From: Macrostomum hystrix
Lineage: Eukaryota; Animalia; Platyhelminthes
Assembly: GCA_950097015.1 (NCBI GenBank)
Contig: CATNEN010000001.1
Coordinates: 17,360,001-17,424,000 of the forward strand
Reading direction: 5' to 3'
Length of the DNA stretch: 64,000 bases
Part shown: positions 12,601 to 20,467 of the stretch, in pieces
How positions within the stretch are numbered: the first letter of the stretch is position 1
How the letters are laid out: each line of letters begins with the position of its first letter
Made by a program: the position numbers and the translations under genes
The notes under the pieces: model-generated
Databases searched by the model: none
Told to the model about the DNA's origin: nothing
The model's input: only the letters and a program-made list of their open reading frames with translations

Positions 12601-12810
12601 AAACTTGTTTTGGCTTGCCACTTTATATTGAGCATTTTAGCTTAAATAACTTTCTAGAAAACCCGTACTTCTTTAAAATTCACACTTCGGGCATTACTCT
12701 GGAGTTTTTTCCAAGCAAAAATATTTTACTTAAGACCATTAATAAACACATGCATCGAAAAAAACACAATAAACTACTAAAAAAGTTTTTTCATTCTTTT
12801 TCAGCAAAAA

Positions 12811-15800
12811 ATGGATGACCAAATAGATGCCATCAGACAAGCAGCATCTACAAGTAAATTGAATATTGTGAAAGATCTGCCCATTGCTGCACCAGGCGTA
12901 AAAGATCAGGGCTGCTTGGAAGCAGTGGGTTCAGCTGCATCTGAGAAAAATTGGAAAAAGGTGAAACTTCTTTTGCAGACAGTCGCCGACCAAAAAGTGA
13001 GAGATCAGTGCTGCTTGGCGATCGCTAGCGATGCCGCATGTCAGATAAGTGGCGAAATAGTGAATATTATTTTGAAGACCGTCTCTGAACCAACTGTGAA
13101 AGATCAGTGCTGCTTGAAGGCAGTGGGTTCAGCTGCATCTAAGAAAAATTGGGAAATGGTGAAACTTCTTTTGCAGACAGTCGCCGACCAAAAAGTGAAA
13201 GATCAGTGCTGCTTGAAGGCAGTGGGTTCAGCTGCAACTAAGAAAAATTGGGAAATGGTGAAACTTCTTTTGCAGACAGTCGCCGACCAAAAAGTGAAAG
13301 ATCAGTGCTGCTTGAAGGCAGTGGGTTCAGCTGCAACTAAGAAAAATTGGGAAATGGTGAAACTTCTTTTGCAGACAGTCGCCGACCAAAAAGCGAGAGA
13401 TCAGTGCTGCTTGAAGGCAGTGTGGTCAGCTGCATCTGAGAAAAATTGGGGAATGGTGAAACTTCTTTTGCAGAAAGTCGCCGACCAAAAAGTGAGAGAT
13501 CAGTGCTGCTTGGAAGCAGTGGGTTCAGCTGCATCTGAGAAAAATTGGGGAATGGTGAAACTTCTTTTGCAGACAGTCGCCGACCAAAAAGTGAGAGATC
13601 AGTGCTGCTTGGCGATCGCTAGCGATGCCGCATGTCAGATAAGTGGCGAAATAGTGAATATTATTTTGAAGACCGTCTCTGAACCAACTGTGAAAGATCA
13701 GTGCTGCTTGAAGGCAGTGGGTTCAGCTGCATCTAAGAAAAATTGGGAAATGGTGAAACTTCTTTTGCAGACAGTCGCCGACCAAAAAGTGAAAGATCAG
13801 TGCTGCTTGAAGGCAGTGGGTTCAGCTGCAACTAAGAAAAATTGGGAAATGGTGAAACTTCTTTTGCAGACAGTCGCCGACCAAAAAGCGAGAGATCAGT
13901 GCTGCTTGAAGGCAGTGTGGTCAGCTGCATCTGAGAAAAATTGGGGAATGGTGAAACTTCTTTTGCAGAAAGTCGCCGACCAAAAAGTGAGAGATCAGTG
14001 CTGCTTGGAAGCAGTGGGTTCAGCTGCATCTGAGAAAAATTGGGGAATGGTGAAACTTCTTTTGCAGACAGTCACCGACCAAAAAGTGAGAGATCAGTGC
14101 TGCTTGAAGGCAGTGTGGTCAGCTGAATCTGAGAAAAATTGGAAAATGGTGAAACTTCTTTTGCAGACAGTCGCCGACCTAAAAGTGAGAGATCAGTGCT
14201 GCTTGGAAGTAGTGGGTTCAGCTGCATCTGAGAAAAATTGGGAAATGGTGAAACTTCTTTTGCAGACAGTCGCCGACCAAAAAGTGAGAGATCAGTGCTG
14301 CTTGGAGATCGCTAGCGATGCCGCATGTCAGGAAAGTGGCAAAATGGTGGAACTTATTTTGAAGACCGTCTCTGACCCAACTGTGAAAGATTAGTGCTGC
14401 TTGAGTGCAGTGGGTTATGCTGCAAGAAAGAAAAATTGGGAAATGGTGAAACTTCTTATGAAGACCGTCTCTGACCCAACTGTGAAAGATCAGTGCTGCT
14501 TGAATGCAGTGGGTTCAGCTGCAACAAAGAAAAATTGGGAAATGGTGAAACTTATTTTGCAGACAGTCGCCGACCAAAAAGTGAGAGATCAGTGCTGCTT
14601 GGAGATCGCTAGAAAGACCCAATATCAGAAAAGTGGCAAAATCGTGAATCTCATTTTGGAGACCGTCTCTGACCCAACTGTGAAAGATCAGTGCTGCTTG
14701 AAGACAGTGTGGTCAGCTGCAACTGAGAGAAAATGGGAAATGGTGAAACTTCTTTTGCAGACAGTCGCCGACCAAAAAGTGAGAGATCAGTGCTGCTTGG
14801 AGATCGCTAGCAAGGCCGCATGTCAGGAAAGTGGCGAAATGGTGGAACTTATTTTGAAGACCGTCTCTAACCCAACTGTGAGAGATCAGTGCTGCTTGGA
14901 GATCACTCGCTATGCCGCATGGCAGGAAAGTGGCGAAATGGTGGAACTTATTTTGAAGACAGTCGCCGACCAAAAAGTGAGAGATCAGTGCTGCTTGGAG
15001 ATCGCTAGAAAGGCCCAATATCAGAAAAGTGGCAAAATCGTGAATCTCATTTTGGAGACCGTCTCTGACCCAACTGTGAAAGCTCAGTGCTGCTTGAAGG
15101 CAGTGGATTCAGCTGCATCTGAGAAAAATTGGGAAATGGTGAAACGTCTTTTGCAGACAGTCGCCGACCAAAAAGTGAGAGATCAGTGCTGCTTGAAGAT
15201 CGTTTCCTGTGCCCCATATCAGGAAAGTGGCGAAATGGTGGAACTTATTTTAAAGACCGTCTCTGACCCAACTGTGAGAGATCAGTGCTGCTTGAATGCA
15301 GTGGGTTCAGCTGCAACAAAGAAAAATCTGGAAATGGTGAAACTTCTTTTGCAGACAGTCACCGACCAAAAAGTGAAAGATCAGTGCTGCTTGAAGATCG
15401 TTTCCTTTACCCTATATCAGATAAGTGGCGATATAATGGAACTTATTTTGAAGACCGTCTCTGACCCAACTGTGAAAGATCAGTGCTGCTTGAATGCAGT
15501 GGGTTCAGCTGCAACTAAGAAAAATTGGGAAATGGTGAAACTTCTTTTGCAGACAGTCGCCGACCAAAAAGTGAGAGATCAGTGCTGCTTGGAGATCGCT
15601 AGCAAGGCCGCATGTCAGGAAAGTGGCGAAATGGTGGAACTTATTTTGAAGACCGTCTCTGACCCAACTGAGAAAGATCAGTGCTGCTTGAAAGCAGTGG
15701 GTTCAGCTGCATCTGAGAAAAATTGGGAAATGGTGAAACTTCTTTTGCAGACAGTCGCCGACCAAAAAGTGAGAGATCAGTGCTGCTTGAAGATCGCTTT

Positions 15801-18800
15801 CTGGGCCCCATATCAGATAAGTGGCGAAATGGTGGAACTTATTTTGAAGACCGTCTCTGACCCAACTGAGAAAGATCAGTGCTGCTTGAAGGCAGTGGAT
15901 TCAGCTGCATCTGAGAAAAATTGGGAAATGGTGAATCTTCTTTTGCAGACAGTCGCCGACCAAAAAGTGAGAGATCAGTGCTGCTTTCAGGCATTTAAGC
16001 TAGCTGCATCGCAGAAAGTCCTAGGAATAATTAATTTACCTATATTTGACTGGTTTCTTCAGTCCAGCAGCATCCTTAACTTTTGTTCGTCGATGGCTAT
16101 TACTGGCTCGAACTCTGTTCTCACTCAGGCTCTGTCTATAATGCAGCCAGCTGAAATCACACATCTACTCTCTGTCTCAATCTCTCACCGTCATGTCGCA
16201 CTGGCTCTCACACTCCTCCATGACGAGCGATTCAGTAGAGAACATGTCGATCTGCCAGACAGCACCGGAGCCACTGCTCTCATGCATGCAGCTGATGGAG
16301 GTCATCACGAGCTCATTGAGAAACTGCTAAAACTCGGTGCGTCCGTGCGTGCAGAAGACTGTCAGGGCCGAACTGCTCTGACTCGGGCTTTTGAATTTGG
16401 TCACGTGCGAGCGGCCAAGATGCTGATGGATGGTGGAGCGGATGCGAACCATCGAGGCGGTCGTGGTCTGACGTGTGCGCAGCTGGCGGAGCAGTTGGGA
16501 CACTTGCAGCTGCTGCGTTTGTTGGAGTCCCACAGGCAGCCCCGTAGGTGAGTAAGATTTTATATTGAGAAAACTGAAATTGGGAACTTTCTCGATAGTT
16601 TTTAGAAGTCTGGATGTGTGCACATACTTATTCTCGAATATCGCCGAACTTACATATCCGAATGTATGATCTGTAAATTTACCGTGCTTCTAATCAATCG
16701 ATTCGTTTCTTGGGACATTAATTTGATTTCTAAACTTTTAGTCATAGAAATGTGACTAACAGTGTGTTCTGGCTTTGTTTGGTGAACAAGTCTTTGAACT
16801 GGGCTCACCCACGAGATTGCTATTCCCTGAACTAGGCATATCAACTAGACGTGCGATGTTTTGCTCTGAGACAAATTGCTTCCATGTGCTGAGATTCAAT
16901 CTCTAGTTCAGGACTTTAAGCTCCGACATTCAAATATAAATCTGTTGCATATACAATGTTCCTAAGTAATCCATGGCTAATAAATTGCCTTTTAGCTCGC
17001 CTGAAGATGACTTTCCAACGGTTAGCGATCCGTGAGTACTTTTTTTACTGTGACCTGACTAGCTTAGAGTCCAGCTCGTAATATTATGCATATGTTTTCC
17101 TTTTTCCATTTTCAAGGTATTCCTTCATTTGTAGAGGGGCGATAATCTACCCACAGGCACTTCTGTACTCAAAGCTATTCCTACTTTTATATGTTGCATG
17201 TCAGATTTATAGAAAGTATATCTATGCGTTCATAGTTGGTAAGTAACACAGATAATATATAACTGTGGTAAGTATATATAAGTGTGCTCATGCATATCAA
17301 GTTTCTTGCTATCAAAATACTATTTTACAAAATAATAACTTGATTTTATTTTTTGGCTATTTTTACTACTGATGGCTGGTCCTAAGAGTAGTGTGAGAGA
17401 AAATTAACTGAGTGACCAATCTAGTTATATATTATCTGTGGTAAGTAATGCACAAATTGATCACCTAATAAATCCGAATTGAACGCCGAGAACGGTTGAC
17501 GATTTTTACAGGTCGATCAGATTGTACTTCATCAGCATCGACATTGCCCTGACTAAAATTTGCAAATTTCATAGTATTTTTAACACCTTACTTTCCTTCT
17601 CCTTAATTGTAATTCTAAGAGGTAACATGCTTTTAAATTGGATCAACACTGTACTTTCAGGTCAGCAGACAATACACAGAATGATGAAGAACTTAGCAGA
17701 GAGCTTCACAAACTGCTCCTCAAGGCAGGATTCTCTGACAGTAGAGCCAAGTGCCAGCAGAGAATGGCTGACTGGCTCGAGGGCGTAGCTCAAGTCCTCA
17801 CTAAGGATGACAGGCGGATGACAGGCAGCTACGCAGAGGGCTGGGCCAACAGTCTGGTGCAAGTGAACGGCAGGACAGGAGCTGACTCGGACATTGACTG
17901 GACTGTGCTGCTTCAAGGGCAGCTCATGCATCTAGAGGACGGTTGTACAAAAAATAGAGATTGCAGAGATGTGTCAACGCTACCTGTCACGCAGGGTCAT
18001 GCAAAAGTGCCCGTGGGAGCCGGTAAGTTCAAATAAAAAATGATTTGCTTTTCTACTGAAAGCTGCCCATGTGATACTCTCACACAAAGTTCTAAATATA
18101 GTAGACTCACATAAAATAGACAGGTGGTGTGCATGAAAAGTGACCAAAGTTGTCTATATATAAATTACATCATATATATGTGAGTCAGTCAAAAAACAGA
18201 ATGGCTTAGCTGCCCTAAACCTCCTACCTAAGGTAGATGAAATTCTGCTTAGTATGGAAAGAAGTCAAATTGCACACGAGTGAATCAGGTACCAAAATGC
18301 TGCAACTGCTGATCGGTAAACATGGTTCCACATCTTATTTCAGGCAGCCAACCTGCAATTTCATGTTCCGCATGCGGTGTGCGGCCTGCACAGGACACTT
18401 GCCATGCAATCCAGTGCTGTTCTGCATTTTGTAGGGCAAATATAAAGAAGCTTATACGAATATATATATGGGAACCAGTCCACCTCGTGAGGGCAACCAG
18501 ACCAAAATCGACCAATGAGCTGAGAGTGAGTTTCAGCTTTCAGGAGAGAAAGATCATGAGGCGTCTCAATACGGTGCAAGGCCAATTGTTCACAGTCATA
18601 AAATTTATCTTTAAGAAGCACCTGCACCTACCATCCAATCTGAAGACTCATGGTCTAAAGACGTACAATGCCAAAACTCTGCTTTTCTTTATGCTGGACA
18701 CGCACGGACAAAAAAATAAGGAAATTTGGAAGCCGCAGAATCTTGTCTCACTACTGAAGGAGTCCCTTCGCAAGATGTTGAGCTTCATCGACTCAAGCAG

Positions 18801-19863
18801 CTCAAATGACGATTGCATGCCGCACTTCTTCATGCCGGATGCTCCGCTCTACTTCAAGAACGCTGGAATCGGAGGAGACTTTGACAACACAAAGGCGGAG
18901 GTTCGAATCCAGCTGAAACAGCTGATAAGTGACATCGGCGCAGTGGTTAACCAGATAAGGGGACTCGTGAGGCCTCTTCAGTCAGAAAAATTCTTCTTTC
19001 ATCCTTTCACTCTGCTGCCACTGGCATCGCCACCAGCTGTCACTGAAGTAAGGCAACGGACCGACAGTAAAAGCCACTTTTTTAAGTTCGCAGACGCATA
19101 TTGTGTAGTGCACCAGTGCTTAAGTAAGCTGCAGTCAAAGTCATTTGATACGGACACCTTCACGGGACATGTAGGTCTTATACGTGAGCTACCGTGGTGC
19201 AAATGCGCGTTCAAGTGCTTAACCGCCATTTCCTTCTTGAAGCTTAAAATCTTGGAAGAGGCTCGGAGTACTCTTATGGAGCTACGAGACCACAATGTCA
19301 AGATTGGATTCCGCCCTCAAGACTTAAAACTGAAAAGATACTACTTTGAATCTACAAGGATCCTACTACCTGAAGATTCAGACTGGGCGTGGAGGTTCTG
19401 CTTCCCCTGCGAAACTAAGCCTCAGTTCGCATTTCTTCCGGAGTTCACACAGAGCCTGTTTACAGCCAGACTGTCGCAGGCTAGCTCCTCCCACCTGTAC
19501 GTGAACTTCCGGTGCCTGAGCTGGAGTCTCCAAGCAGAGTATCTCGATAGATCACTGATTGACTTCAATGCGTGGCTCTCGGAGCTAGAAGAGGACCCGG
19601 ACTTGGAGGAGCTGCTCACTCTGGCTCACTACAGCGACAAACTTAACCACGTTGAGTTCAGCCTGCGACAGATGGAGATCGTCAGAGACGACAGACGCAT
19701 CGCCATGGAAACACAGGACGAGGAGAAGATTCGCTGGGTGAAGGAGAAGCTGGAAGGACTTCGAGCAGCAGCTGAGTCCTCAGCGATGGAGACGGAGACC
19801 GAGTCTGCCACGCCAACAGGCAAGAGGCGAGGCAGAAAGCGGAAGGCAGACGACCGATTGTGA
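12811..19863 (+). CDS. Ankyrin-repeat-array cGAS-like receptor (Mab-21/cGLR nucleotidyltransferase), about 1884 codons, one internal TAG at 14392-14394
   Basis: Exons 12811-16547, 16996-17031 (36-nt micro-exon), 17661-18022 and 18344-19863. All introns are GT-AG and phase-compatible, total 5655 nt. Contains 31 x 33-aa repeats, 3 canonical ANK repeats (TGATALMHAADGG, QGRTALTRAFEFG, RGLTCAQLAEQLG), NTase motif MTGSYAEG...DSDIDWTV, third Asp in QDTCHAIQC, Mab-21 motifs LRVSFSFQERKIM, KTYNAKTLLFF and CMPHFFMP, and a basic tail KRRGRKRK. A splice acceptor at 12804 means upstream exons or an outron are possible. Confidence 0.85.
12904..15972 (+). repeat. Coding tandem array of 31 x 99-bp units (33-aa ankyrin-register repeats, two subtypes)
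   Basis: Type A is DQCCLKAVGSAASKKNWEMVKLLLQTVADQKVK and type B is DQCCLEIASKAACQESGEMVELILKTVSDPTVK. There are no indels across the array. Confidence 0.95.
17661..19863 (+). CDS. cGAS/Mab-21-like NTase domain exons of the ANK-cGLR gene
   Basis: Exon 17661-18022 (GS...DxD motif) splices in phase 1 to exon 18344-19863 (Mab-21 lobe plus C-terminal helical region). Confidence 0.85.
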
Positions 19864-20467
19864 AGAGGCAGTCGGACTCGCTGCCGTGTGAATTTGATGT
19901 CTGTCGACTGTCTACAGTAGCTAACCAGTTACATACTGAAATTCACCAAATTCCCATGCAAATAAGCGAATAAAATGTGTACATTGCTTGTTTGTGTCTA
20001 ACTCTTTGGCGTTTTAGGAACAATATTCCTGCTTTTCACACATACCCAAATTTAGCAAAGCATTGGACAGAAGATAAGAGACTTGACAAGGCCGTAGAAA
20101 AGAACGAGTCACTTCAAGCATTTAGTTTGATTAATCTGCCATCGCTAGCTAAATCATTAAAGATACATTTTGTTGTGTGTCGTAACACACATTTTATATT
20201 CAAAGTTTAAGCGACCAGTTTCATTGCCTAAGTCAGTTACACGTTAGTTCACAGTTAGGCAGAAAAAAACTAATTAAGATTAGAAATATATATCTAGTAT
20301 CTAGCTTGTCAAGTCTTTTATCTCCAATGTCAAACCGACTTTGTGCAACTTCGACGATGTAAATTTTCCGCGTTGTAAAACATTGGGTTTACGAAATCTT
20401 GGTGCTAGAAATGAAGCACAAAGTTATACTTTATGATTTTATTGGTGTCATTTTCCACCTTTAAAAA

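Follow-up and report, generated by a model that had tools for sequence, protein, structure and literature searches.

The flatworm Macrostomum hystrix carries a transcribed and spliced four-exon gene in which an exon encoding a long ankyrin (ANK) array is joined to exons encoding a cGAS/Mab-21-like enzyme, the architecture of an ankyrin-bearing cGAS-like receptor (cGLR). The gene lies on the + strand at positions 12811 to 19863 of the window, by which we mean the whole 64,000-nucleotide (nt) stretch of assembly GCA_950097015.1 analysed here (contig CATNEN010000001.1, positions 17,360,001 to 17,424,000); coordinates given without a contig name refer to it. With a probability of roughly 0.7, we read the present copy as a recently disabled gene or null allele within a family that turns over by birth and death, and the mechanism that we infer for its intact relatives is as follows. 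The encoded protein would consist, from N to C terminus, of 32 DQCC units, a linker, three canonical ANK repeats, a micro-exon linker, a cGAS-like nucleotidyltransferase (NTase) with the catalytic residues GS, DxD, and D, and a helical domain of 300 amino acids (aa); in the present copy, a CAG-to-TAG change at 14392 truncates this frame after 527 codons. Intact members would be inactive until bound by a ligand and, once bound, would synthesise an oligonucleotide, cyclic or linear, as a second messenger to be read by the divergent STING-like proteins of the genome. The ankyrin solenoid would provide a surface for binding proteins or ligands, with inner-helix residues and a unit number that differ among units and paralogues, and the array may set ligand specificity.

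Gene structure and transcript evidence

The window is eukaryotic, and the list of its open reading frames (ORFs) places four frames on the + strand between 12811 and 19863 (12811-14394, 14401-16551, 17638-18036, and 18322-19863). An earlier reading of this DNA from its letters alone, referred to here as the sequence-only reading, proposed four phase-compatible exons joined at 16547/16996, 17031/17661, and 18022/18344, and all three joints are borne out by the data described below. Its equation of the four ORFs with the four exons was mistaken, in that the first two ORFs both belong to exon 1, where they are separated because of an in-frame TAG at 14392-14394, and exon 2 is a micro-exon absent from the ORF track.

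Exon 1 (12811-16547) runs from the start ATG at 12811 through an N-cap, the 32-unit array, a linker, and the three canonical ANK repeats and ends at AG/GTGAGT in phase 2. Exon 2 (16996-17031) is only 36 nt long, encodes SPEDDFPTVSD, and passes from phase 2 to phase 2. Exon 3 (17661-18022) encodes the N-lobe of the NTase, with the GS pair at 17824-17829 and DID at 17890-17898, and exon 4 (18344-19863) encodes the third catalytic Asp (18394-18396), the Mab-21_C lobe (about 18619-18849), and the C-terminal domain of 300 aa, up to the stop codon TGA at 19861-19863. The four exons total 5,652 nt, or 1,884 codons. The introns are of the GT..AG type, and the boundaries read CGTAG/GTGAGT at 16547 and TTTTAG/C at 16996, CC/GTGAGT at 17031 and TTTCAG/G at 17661, and CCG/GTAAGT at 18022 and TTTCAG/G at 18344.

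Public sequencing runs bear directly on this gene model. X1 is a DNA run, and X2, X3, and X4 are runs of one 2020 study, their kind not being on record. The 16547/16996 and 17031/17661 joints are both present in one X2 contig, and the 18022/18344 joint is present in contigs of X2, X3, and X4; in the contigs of these three runs the introns are nearly uncovered and are skipped, and all joints are GT..AG. In X1, the introns are covered and none of the three joints is present. Because of this difference, X2 to X4 are RNA-derived on our reading. Proteins of the related species Macrostomum lignano show the same arrangement, in that P0001, P0002, P0004, and P0005 are collinear across the exon 3/4 junction, their matches to the two exons lying back to back (in P0001, exon 3 matches residues 545-663 and exon 4 matches from residue 663). 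We conclude that the gene exists with this architecture and is expressed, and that the four-exon transcript is correctly spliced.

The enzyme domain

The assignment of the product of exons 3 and 4 to the cGAS/Mab-21-like enzymes, with the catalytic residues in place, is well supported. The motifs GSYAEG (its GS at 17824-17829), DSDID (Asp codons at 17890-17892 and 17896-17898), and QDTCHAI (Asp codon at 18394-18396) are present as the sequence-only reading had described them, and the last ORF matches Mab-21_C (PF20266) with 27.2 bits against a cut-off of 24.1 (E value of 4.5e-6). The exons were searched one by one. A phmmer search with exon 4 among 1.84 billion representative sequences returned 150 proteins, the best of which were all from M. 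lignano (57-68% identity); the weaker matches, which contain PF03281 as well as PF20266, thereby qualify as bona fide Mab-21 proteins. When the family and these bona fide Mab-21 proteins were aligned, five columns proved to be conserved at 90% or more (S42, G46, D63, D65, and D121 in the numbering of P0026), and it is exactly on these columns that GSYAEG, SDIDW, and PAQDTCHAI of the window fall. The flatworm family has, in addition, an insert of 8 residues between GS and DxD.

The fold was modelled on the M. lignano homologue P0005 (709 aa, with an alignment of 47 rows), which shares 57-59% identity with exons 3 and 4. The prediction is of good quality (predicted local distance difference test score [pLDDT] of 87.7; predicted template modelling score [pTM] of 0.81), and the Foldseek comparison with cGAS and cGLR structures that the sequence-only reading had called for put cGAS on top (E value of 4e-7). 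VIA-align superimposed model residues 110-424 on human cGAS (7ftr) with a Z score of 21.1 and a root mean square deviation of 3.4 Å over 264 residues, and the Z score against the oyster enzyme Cv-cGLR1 (8gjw) was 20.0. The homologue is thus predicted to adopt the bilobed cGAS/Mab-21 fold. Its catalytic residues lie on beta1-GS, on strand beta2 (175-181), and on strand 234-243, and sequence and model together point to a complete active site comprising G-S, [DE]-h-[DE], and a third acidic residue on a neighbouring strand. A profile built from alignment A1 and run against the Protein Data Bank (PDB) was swamped by ankyrin proteins and was uninformative for the enzyme.

The active site is also kept within the genome. 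GS[YF]AEGW...DSD[IM]DW is present in every one of the 29 paralogue loci that match exon 3 (L002 to L030 except L019), and RPAxDxC is present in all 28 loci whose exon 4 match extends to its start (L002 to L029). That the motifs are retained in every readable paralogue speaks for purifying selection at the active site. The same strict retention of GS, DxD, and D speaks against the idea that these proteins are non-enzymatic scaffolds resembling Mab21L. This idea is one form of a wider alternative, possible but not favoured here, in which the array is not a variable ligand sensor at all; in its other form, the basic core would sense nucleic acid in the manner of cGAS and the array would serve as a scaffold or in localisation, autoinhibition, or oligomerisation. 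The enzyme core has a predicted net charge of about +11 at pH 7 (-4.3 for exon 3 and +15 for the Mab-21 part of exon 4) and may bind nucleic acid on its own, and basic surfaces have been tied to nucleic-acid sensing (Li et al. 2023, PMC9980059). The evidence from the array itself bears on this alternative from both sides and is given below.

In two neighbouring paralogues (L013:902-1348 and L020:904-1350, at 3.366 and 3.381 Mb of contig C1), exon 3 contains an internal tandem duplication of GSYAEGW...VNGRT, so that two GS loops precede the DSDID strand.

The C-terminal domain (18961-19860, + strand) is specific to the family and conserved across it. Its 300 aa are modelled (pLDDT of 84.1; pTM of 0.83) as a repeat of helices accompanied by beta-hairpins and ending in a long helix. 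No specific structural match was found for it, either with Foldseek (E values of 0.1 or above) or in a wide VIA-align search (Z scores of 8.5 or below, from generic helical-repeat proteins), and a search of the ESM Atlas gave scores of about 0.8, which amount to noise. We do not claim a new fold.

A premature stop codon in exon 1

The sequence-only reading assumed a continuous giant reading frame and overlooked that exon 1 is interrupted. At 14392-14394, in the unit with index 15, an in-frame TAG replaces the Gln codon of the KDQCC motif found in 30 other units (KD-stop-CC). It is a single C-to-T change (CAG to TAG), it lies in the most divergent unit of the array (its identity to the other units does not exceed 86%), and translation from 12811 ends there after 527 codons. 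The coding sequence of the present copy is therefore not intact, and the same TAG is found in RNA-derived sequence: a 129-nt contig of X3 (record 17) covers 14360-14488 with 0 differences from the window, and it stems from a different study than the one from which the assembly likely derives. With a TAG in frame, and with RNA-derived sequence showing it too, the fusion of 1,884 codons cannot be produced as such. What stands of the sensor-enzyme fusion proposed earlier is that an ankyrin exon is spliced to cGAS/Mab-21-like exons; what falls is that this copy could encode the giant protein.

In view of the exactly matching RNA-derived contig, we reject an assembly error. There is likewise no sign of TAG reassignment, the gene's own terminator being TGA and the other units having Gln at the site. 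The present copy is probably a recently disabled member of the family or a null allele, the nonsense mutation being either fixed or allelic, and transcription and splicing of the gene continue.

Two ways in which a receptor might still be made from this copy were weighed. It is unlikely that the gene is functional at full length, the TAG being an allelic polymorphism, read through, or edited so that a receptor of about 1,883 aa results. Such a reading would account for a transcript that is still correctly spliced and for a frame that stays open past the TAG with its catalytic residues kept, and the contigs of the DNA run X1 leave 14391-14581 uncovered, a gap that could be a heterozygous bubble; it has to contend with the exact TAG in an RNA-derived contig of an independent 2020 study, with the TGA terminator and the lack of any hint of reassignment just described, and with the fact that none of the joints seen in the contigs of the runs would remove the TAG. 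Still more doubtful is a shorter receptor of about 1,340 aa, initiated at the first AUG past the stop (14443) and comprising 16 units, the three ANK repeats, and the enzyme, with the upstream array of 527 codons as a separate product or a long upstream ORF. The ORF at 14401-16551 is indeed open and continues through the spliced exons, and there are paralogues with similarly short first-exon frames, but re-initiation past an ORF of 527 codons is generally inefficient in eukaryotes, and a stop so far upstream of three exon junctions would normally be expected to lead to nonsense-mediated decay. On the preferred reading, that of a disabled copy or null allele, the gene mainly documents birth-and-death turnover, with a giant and recently shuffled array, a fresh nonsense mutation, and transcription and splicing that persist.

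The ankyrin array

Tandem Repeats Finder reports a period of 99 bp in 31.5 copies at 12903-16017 (score of 3234), with a superperiod of 198 bp. Taken together with the Pfam ANK families, a unit table, entropy, and an identity matrix, this defines 32 in-phase ankyrin-like units of 33 aa, the DQCC units, at 12901-16068 on the + strand. The sequence-only reading had the period of 33 aa and the three canonical repeats right and, in counting 31 units, was one short. The canonical repeats (STGATALMHAADGGHHELIEKLL...) occupy 16240-16545 on the + strand (Pfam Ank at residues 623-653 and Ank_2 at residues 614-684 of the ORF that starts at 14401) and are 56-70% identical to M. lignano proteins. The Pfam families Ank, Ank_2, and Ank_4 match the array and the three canonical repeats with E values of 4e-28 to 2e-37. 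For the two halves separately, the E values are 4.3e-28 and 1.3e-32 for Ank and 2e-27 and 2.1e-37 for Ank_2; the first of each pair comes from 12811-14391, a piece that holds array only, and the array is accordingly that of an ankyrin-repeat protein. On our reading, the DQCC unit lines up in register with the consensus of designed ankyrins (DARPins; EMVKLLLQTVADQKVKD versus EVVKLLLEAGADVNAKD), and it lacks the TPLH and glycine signature residues.

Leaving aside the degenerate last unit, 20 units are of an A type (KAVGSAASEKNWEMVKLLLQTVADQKV) and 11 are of a B type (EIASDAACQESGEMVELILKTVSDPTV), and the two alternate (ABAB) in the 3' half of the array. The subtypes are old, as the proportion of synonymous differences (pS) between them is 0.38. 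Superimposed on this old division is a recent event: at 13000-14088 (+ strand), units 1, 2, 4, 5, and 6 are 99-100% identical in nucleotide sequence to units 7, 8, 9, 10, and 11, which we interpret as a recent block duplication in which one unit was gained or lost. The suggestion of the sequence-only reading that the array is re-shuffled holds in this respect, as does its suggestion that the repeats are hypervariable, the amino acid variability being concentrated in one region of the unit. Positions D2, Q3, C4, C5, and L6 are nearly invariant and are kept in M. lignano too, and the variability lies at positions 7-16, which correspond, in our reading of the ankyrin register, to helix 1. For the B-type units, the proportion of nonsynonymous differences (pN) at these positions is 0.314 and pS is 0.017, as against 0.083 and 0.079 at the other positions; positions 7-16 were picked post hoc, after the data had been viewed, and the pairwise comparisons are not independent. 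These values are suggestive of diversifying selection on positions 7-16 of the B-type units. In the A-type units, no focused variability was seen at these positions.

These features divide between the two views of the array. If the array were only a scaffold or a device for localisation, autoinhibition, or oligomerisation, the absence of focused variability from the A-type units would be readily understood, as would the invariance of the beta-turn tips (DQCC), which are the usual ligand contacts in ankyrin proteins. Such a role would leave unexplained the excess of pN over pS at positions 7-16 of the B-type units, where the ratio is about 1 elsewhere, and the wide variation of unit number among paralogues. 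We advance only tentatively, as a speculation that goes beyond the preferred reading, that the DQCC arrays (of about 3 to about 50 units) are germline-diversified recognition modules, with inner-helix residues of B-type units under diversifying selection and frequent duplication and loss of units, and that, together with the STING-like proteins, some 90 genes might form a repeat-based repertoire with a cyclic-nucleotide output. If so, the family would be the cGLR equivalent of repeat receptors of the NLR or VLR type, within a phylum from which cGLR-STING signalling is reported to be mostly lost, and would offer a tractable example of a cGAS-type enzyme coupled to ligands other than nucleic acids.

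The motif D-Q-C-C-L sits at the tip of the ankyrin beta-turn in every unit (12901-16068; residues 60-320 of M. lignano P0001). The resulting row of about two cysteines per unit along the edge of the solenoid suggests a metal-binding or redox-sensitive ladder.

A gene family in Macrostomum

The gene is a member of a large family. A census of paralogues, as the sequence-only reading had proposed, found at least 86 matches to exon 4 in the 220-Mb genome, among 188 candidates, most of them with open frames and many of them grouped in tandem on contig C1, where clusters lie at 12.71-12.82, 4.28-4.33, and 3.35-3.38 Mb. The present copy is a divergent singleton, since its best paralogue is only 67-70% identical to it. 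The unique part of exon 1, namely the linker with the ANK repeats, gave 57 matches with E values of 1e-10 or below, and the stop-free first-exon frames around these range from 112 to 1,810 aa (the latter near 13.854 Mb of contig C1), so that the present array is not the longest in the genome; these open-frame lengths stand in for array lengths, and a short frame can equally be a short array or a broken copy. M. lignano P0001 has the same DQCC units (about 9), three ANK repeats, the enzyme, and the C-terminal domain. M. lignano is a laboratory model that is transgenic and amenable to RNA interference. Most likely, these genes constitute a lineage-specific family of ankyrin-array cGLRs that evolves by birth-and-death turnover. 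Its significance lies in the presence, within one genome, of at least 86 loci of a single ANK-cGLR family with conserved active sites and very different array lengths.

Two further loci are of interest in this context. M. lignano P0006 (1,099 aa) has a Mab-21_C match at about 204-269, ankyrin repeats at 603-737, and a caspase domain (Peptidase_C14) at 872-1094 (E value of 2.7e-25), and could represent a genuine cGLR-ANK-caspase fusion or result from the merging of gene models. The sole full PF03281 Mab-21 match in the M. hystrix genome (C24:4853213-4853761, locus L032; 128.7 bits) is probably the developmental Mab21L orthologue, separate from the expanded family.

Comparison with known systems

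The ANK-cGLR architecture is of an already known kind, and the same family has been catalogued in M. lignano. About 13% of cGLRs carry extra domains, ankyrin repeats included, and bivalves have more than 200 cGLRs (Li et al. 2023, PMC9980059). Table S2 of that study lists M. lignano PAA68676.1, PAA86972.1, and PAA45980.1 with Ank_2, and Table S3 contains five M. lignano enzyme domains (nos. 89-93) that were cloned for a screen without their arrays. Nos. 92 and 93 are near-orthologues of the window enzyme, with which they have GSYAEGWANSLVQVNGRTAADSDIDW, CGVRPAQDTCHAI, LRVSFSFQE, KTYHAKTLLF, and MPHFFMPDAPLYFK in common. The M. lignano proteins differ from the present one in species and sequence (57-68% identity) and in array length (about 9 units in P0001 versus 32 here), and the present copy has a premature stop. 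The unusualness that the sequence-only reading saw in the array was therefore overestimated, both because Li et al. 2023 list and clone M. lignano members and because longer arrays exist in the genome. In the literature searched, we found no discussion of flatworm cGLR arrays, and the giant two-subtype DQCC array with its helix-1 variability, the C-terminal domain of 300 aa, and the size of the family in the present species have not yet been described.

The flatworm enzyme has in common with human and mouse cGAS (7ftr and 4k9b) and oyster Cv-cGLR1 (8gjw) the catalytic residues GS, [DE]h[DE], and D and, as judged from the homologue model, the bilobed fold of NTase and Mab-21_C (Z scores of 20-21). 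It differs from them in sequence (14-19% identity) and in adding the 8-residue insert, the N-terminal ankyrin array, and the 300-aa C-terminal domain. Compared by description, the ANK-cGLR in Fig. 4C of Li et al. 2023 likewise has an ANK module attached to its cGLR core, and cGLRs have radiated in the genome concerned, but it belongs to an independent lineage for which no giant near-identical arrays are reported. From what is generally known of the leucine-rich repeats of NLR and VLR receptors and of the ANK, WD, and TPR arrays of fungal HET/STAND proteins, the flatworm arrays resemble these in having near-identical tandem repeats, variability at a few positions, and recent unit duplication, and the flatworm family is likewise large and clustered, with broken copies. 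Its output domain, in contrast, is a nucleotidyltransferase rather than NACHT or NB-ARC.

Candidate STING-like proteins and the weight of the evidence

A search of the genome for STING, as called for by the sequence-only reading, brought to light a family of about 14 loci with a STING_LBD-like exon (FAWNFAFTFLRLILPKL...), although the similarity is weak and falls below the Pfam cut-off. Pairwise identity among the loci is 33-45%, and for two adjacent matches the identity to the query is 91%. They lie in a cluster at 8.97-9.10 Mb of contig C2 (C2:8967303-9104996) and at C39:4228060-4254083, C39:19157985-19158599, C38:7495215-7495862, and C7:13141615-13142538. For the candidate at C2:9104529-9104996, the only matches among PDB sequences were two STING proteins, with weak E values of 0.15 and 0.51. 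No Pfam match was obtained with its ORF minus the first 16 residues, and a word-based search for homologues of it returned none. We therefore regard these loci only as weak candidates for STING-like genes.

Several results weigh against the interpretation offered here. The C2 candidate gave the single match to PF15009 (STING_LBD), with 25.6 bits against a cut-off of 27. The fold rests on a homologue 57-59% identical to the enzyme and not on the joined protein of the window itself. The Pfam matches expected by the sequence-only reading materialised for the Ank families and PF20266 but not for PF03281, to which exon 3 alone showed no match at an E value of 1 or below, and exon 3 alone and exon 4 alone gave only chance matches to PDB sequences. 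The link from the ankyrin exon through the 36-nt micro-exon to the enzyme exons depends on a single low-depth contig of one run, which is thin, though exact, evidence. The X1 gap over 14391-14581 includes the TAG site, and the TAG may be fixed or heterozygous. Finally, Macrostomum is absent from the main text of PMC9980059, which mentions no M. lignano enzyme, so that none of the five cloned ones is presented there as active, and does not discuss array structure or variability.

Other features of the locus

A likely polyadenylation signal, AATAAA, lies at 19969-19974 on the + strand, about 105 nt past the stop codon, and was recognised by sequence only. At the other end of the gene, within 12791-12810, an acceptor-like polypyrimidine tract with CAG (ttttcag) lies 6 nt before the start ATG and may represent either a trans-splice acceptor for a spliced leader or the final part of an intron in the 5' untranslated region. 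Both features lend support to the gene model.

Within intron 2, the word depth in the DNA run X1 is very high at 17256-17446 (1,394, compared with about 80), and one DNA contig bypasses 17268-17424 (155 bases, with TA..TA ends), having 14 other letters in its place; the segment resembles an element of high copy number or a polymorphic indel. In the exons, word depth in the DNA run is raised 9- to 25-fold over the flanks at 17829-18019, 18784-18974, and 19357-19738. These are the most conserved segments of the family, and the raised depth is consistent with many paralogues having 31-mers in common.

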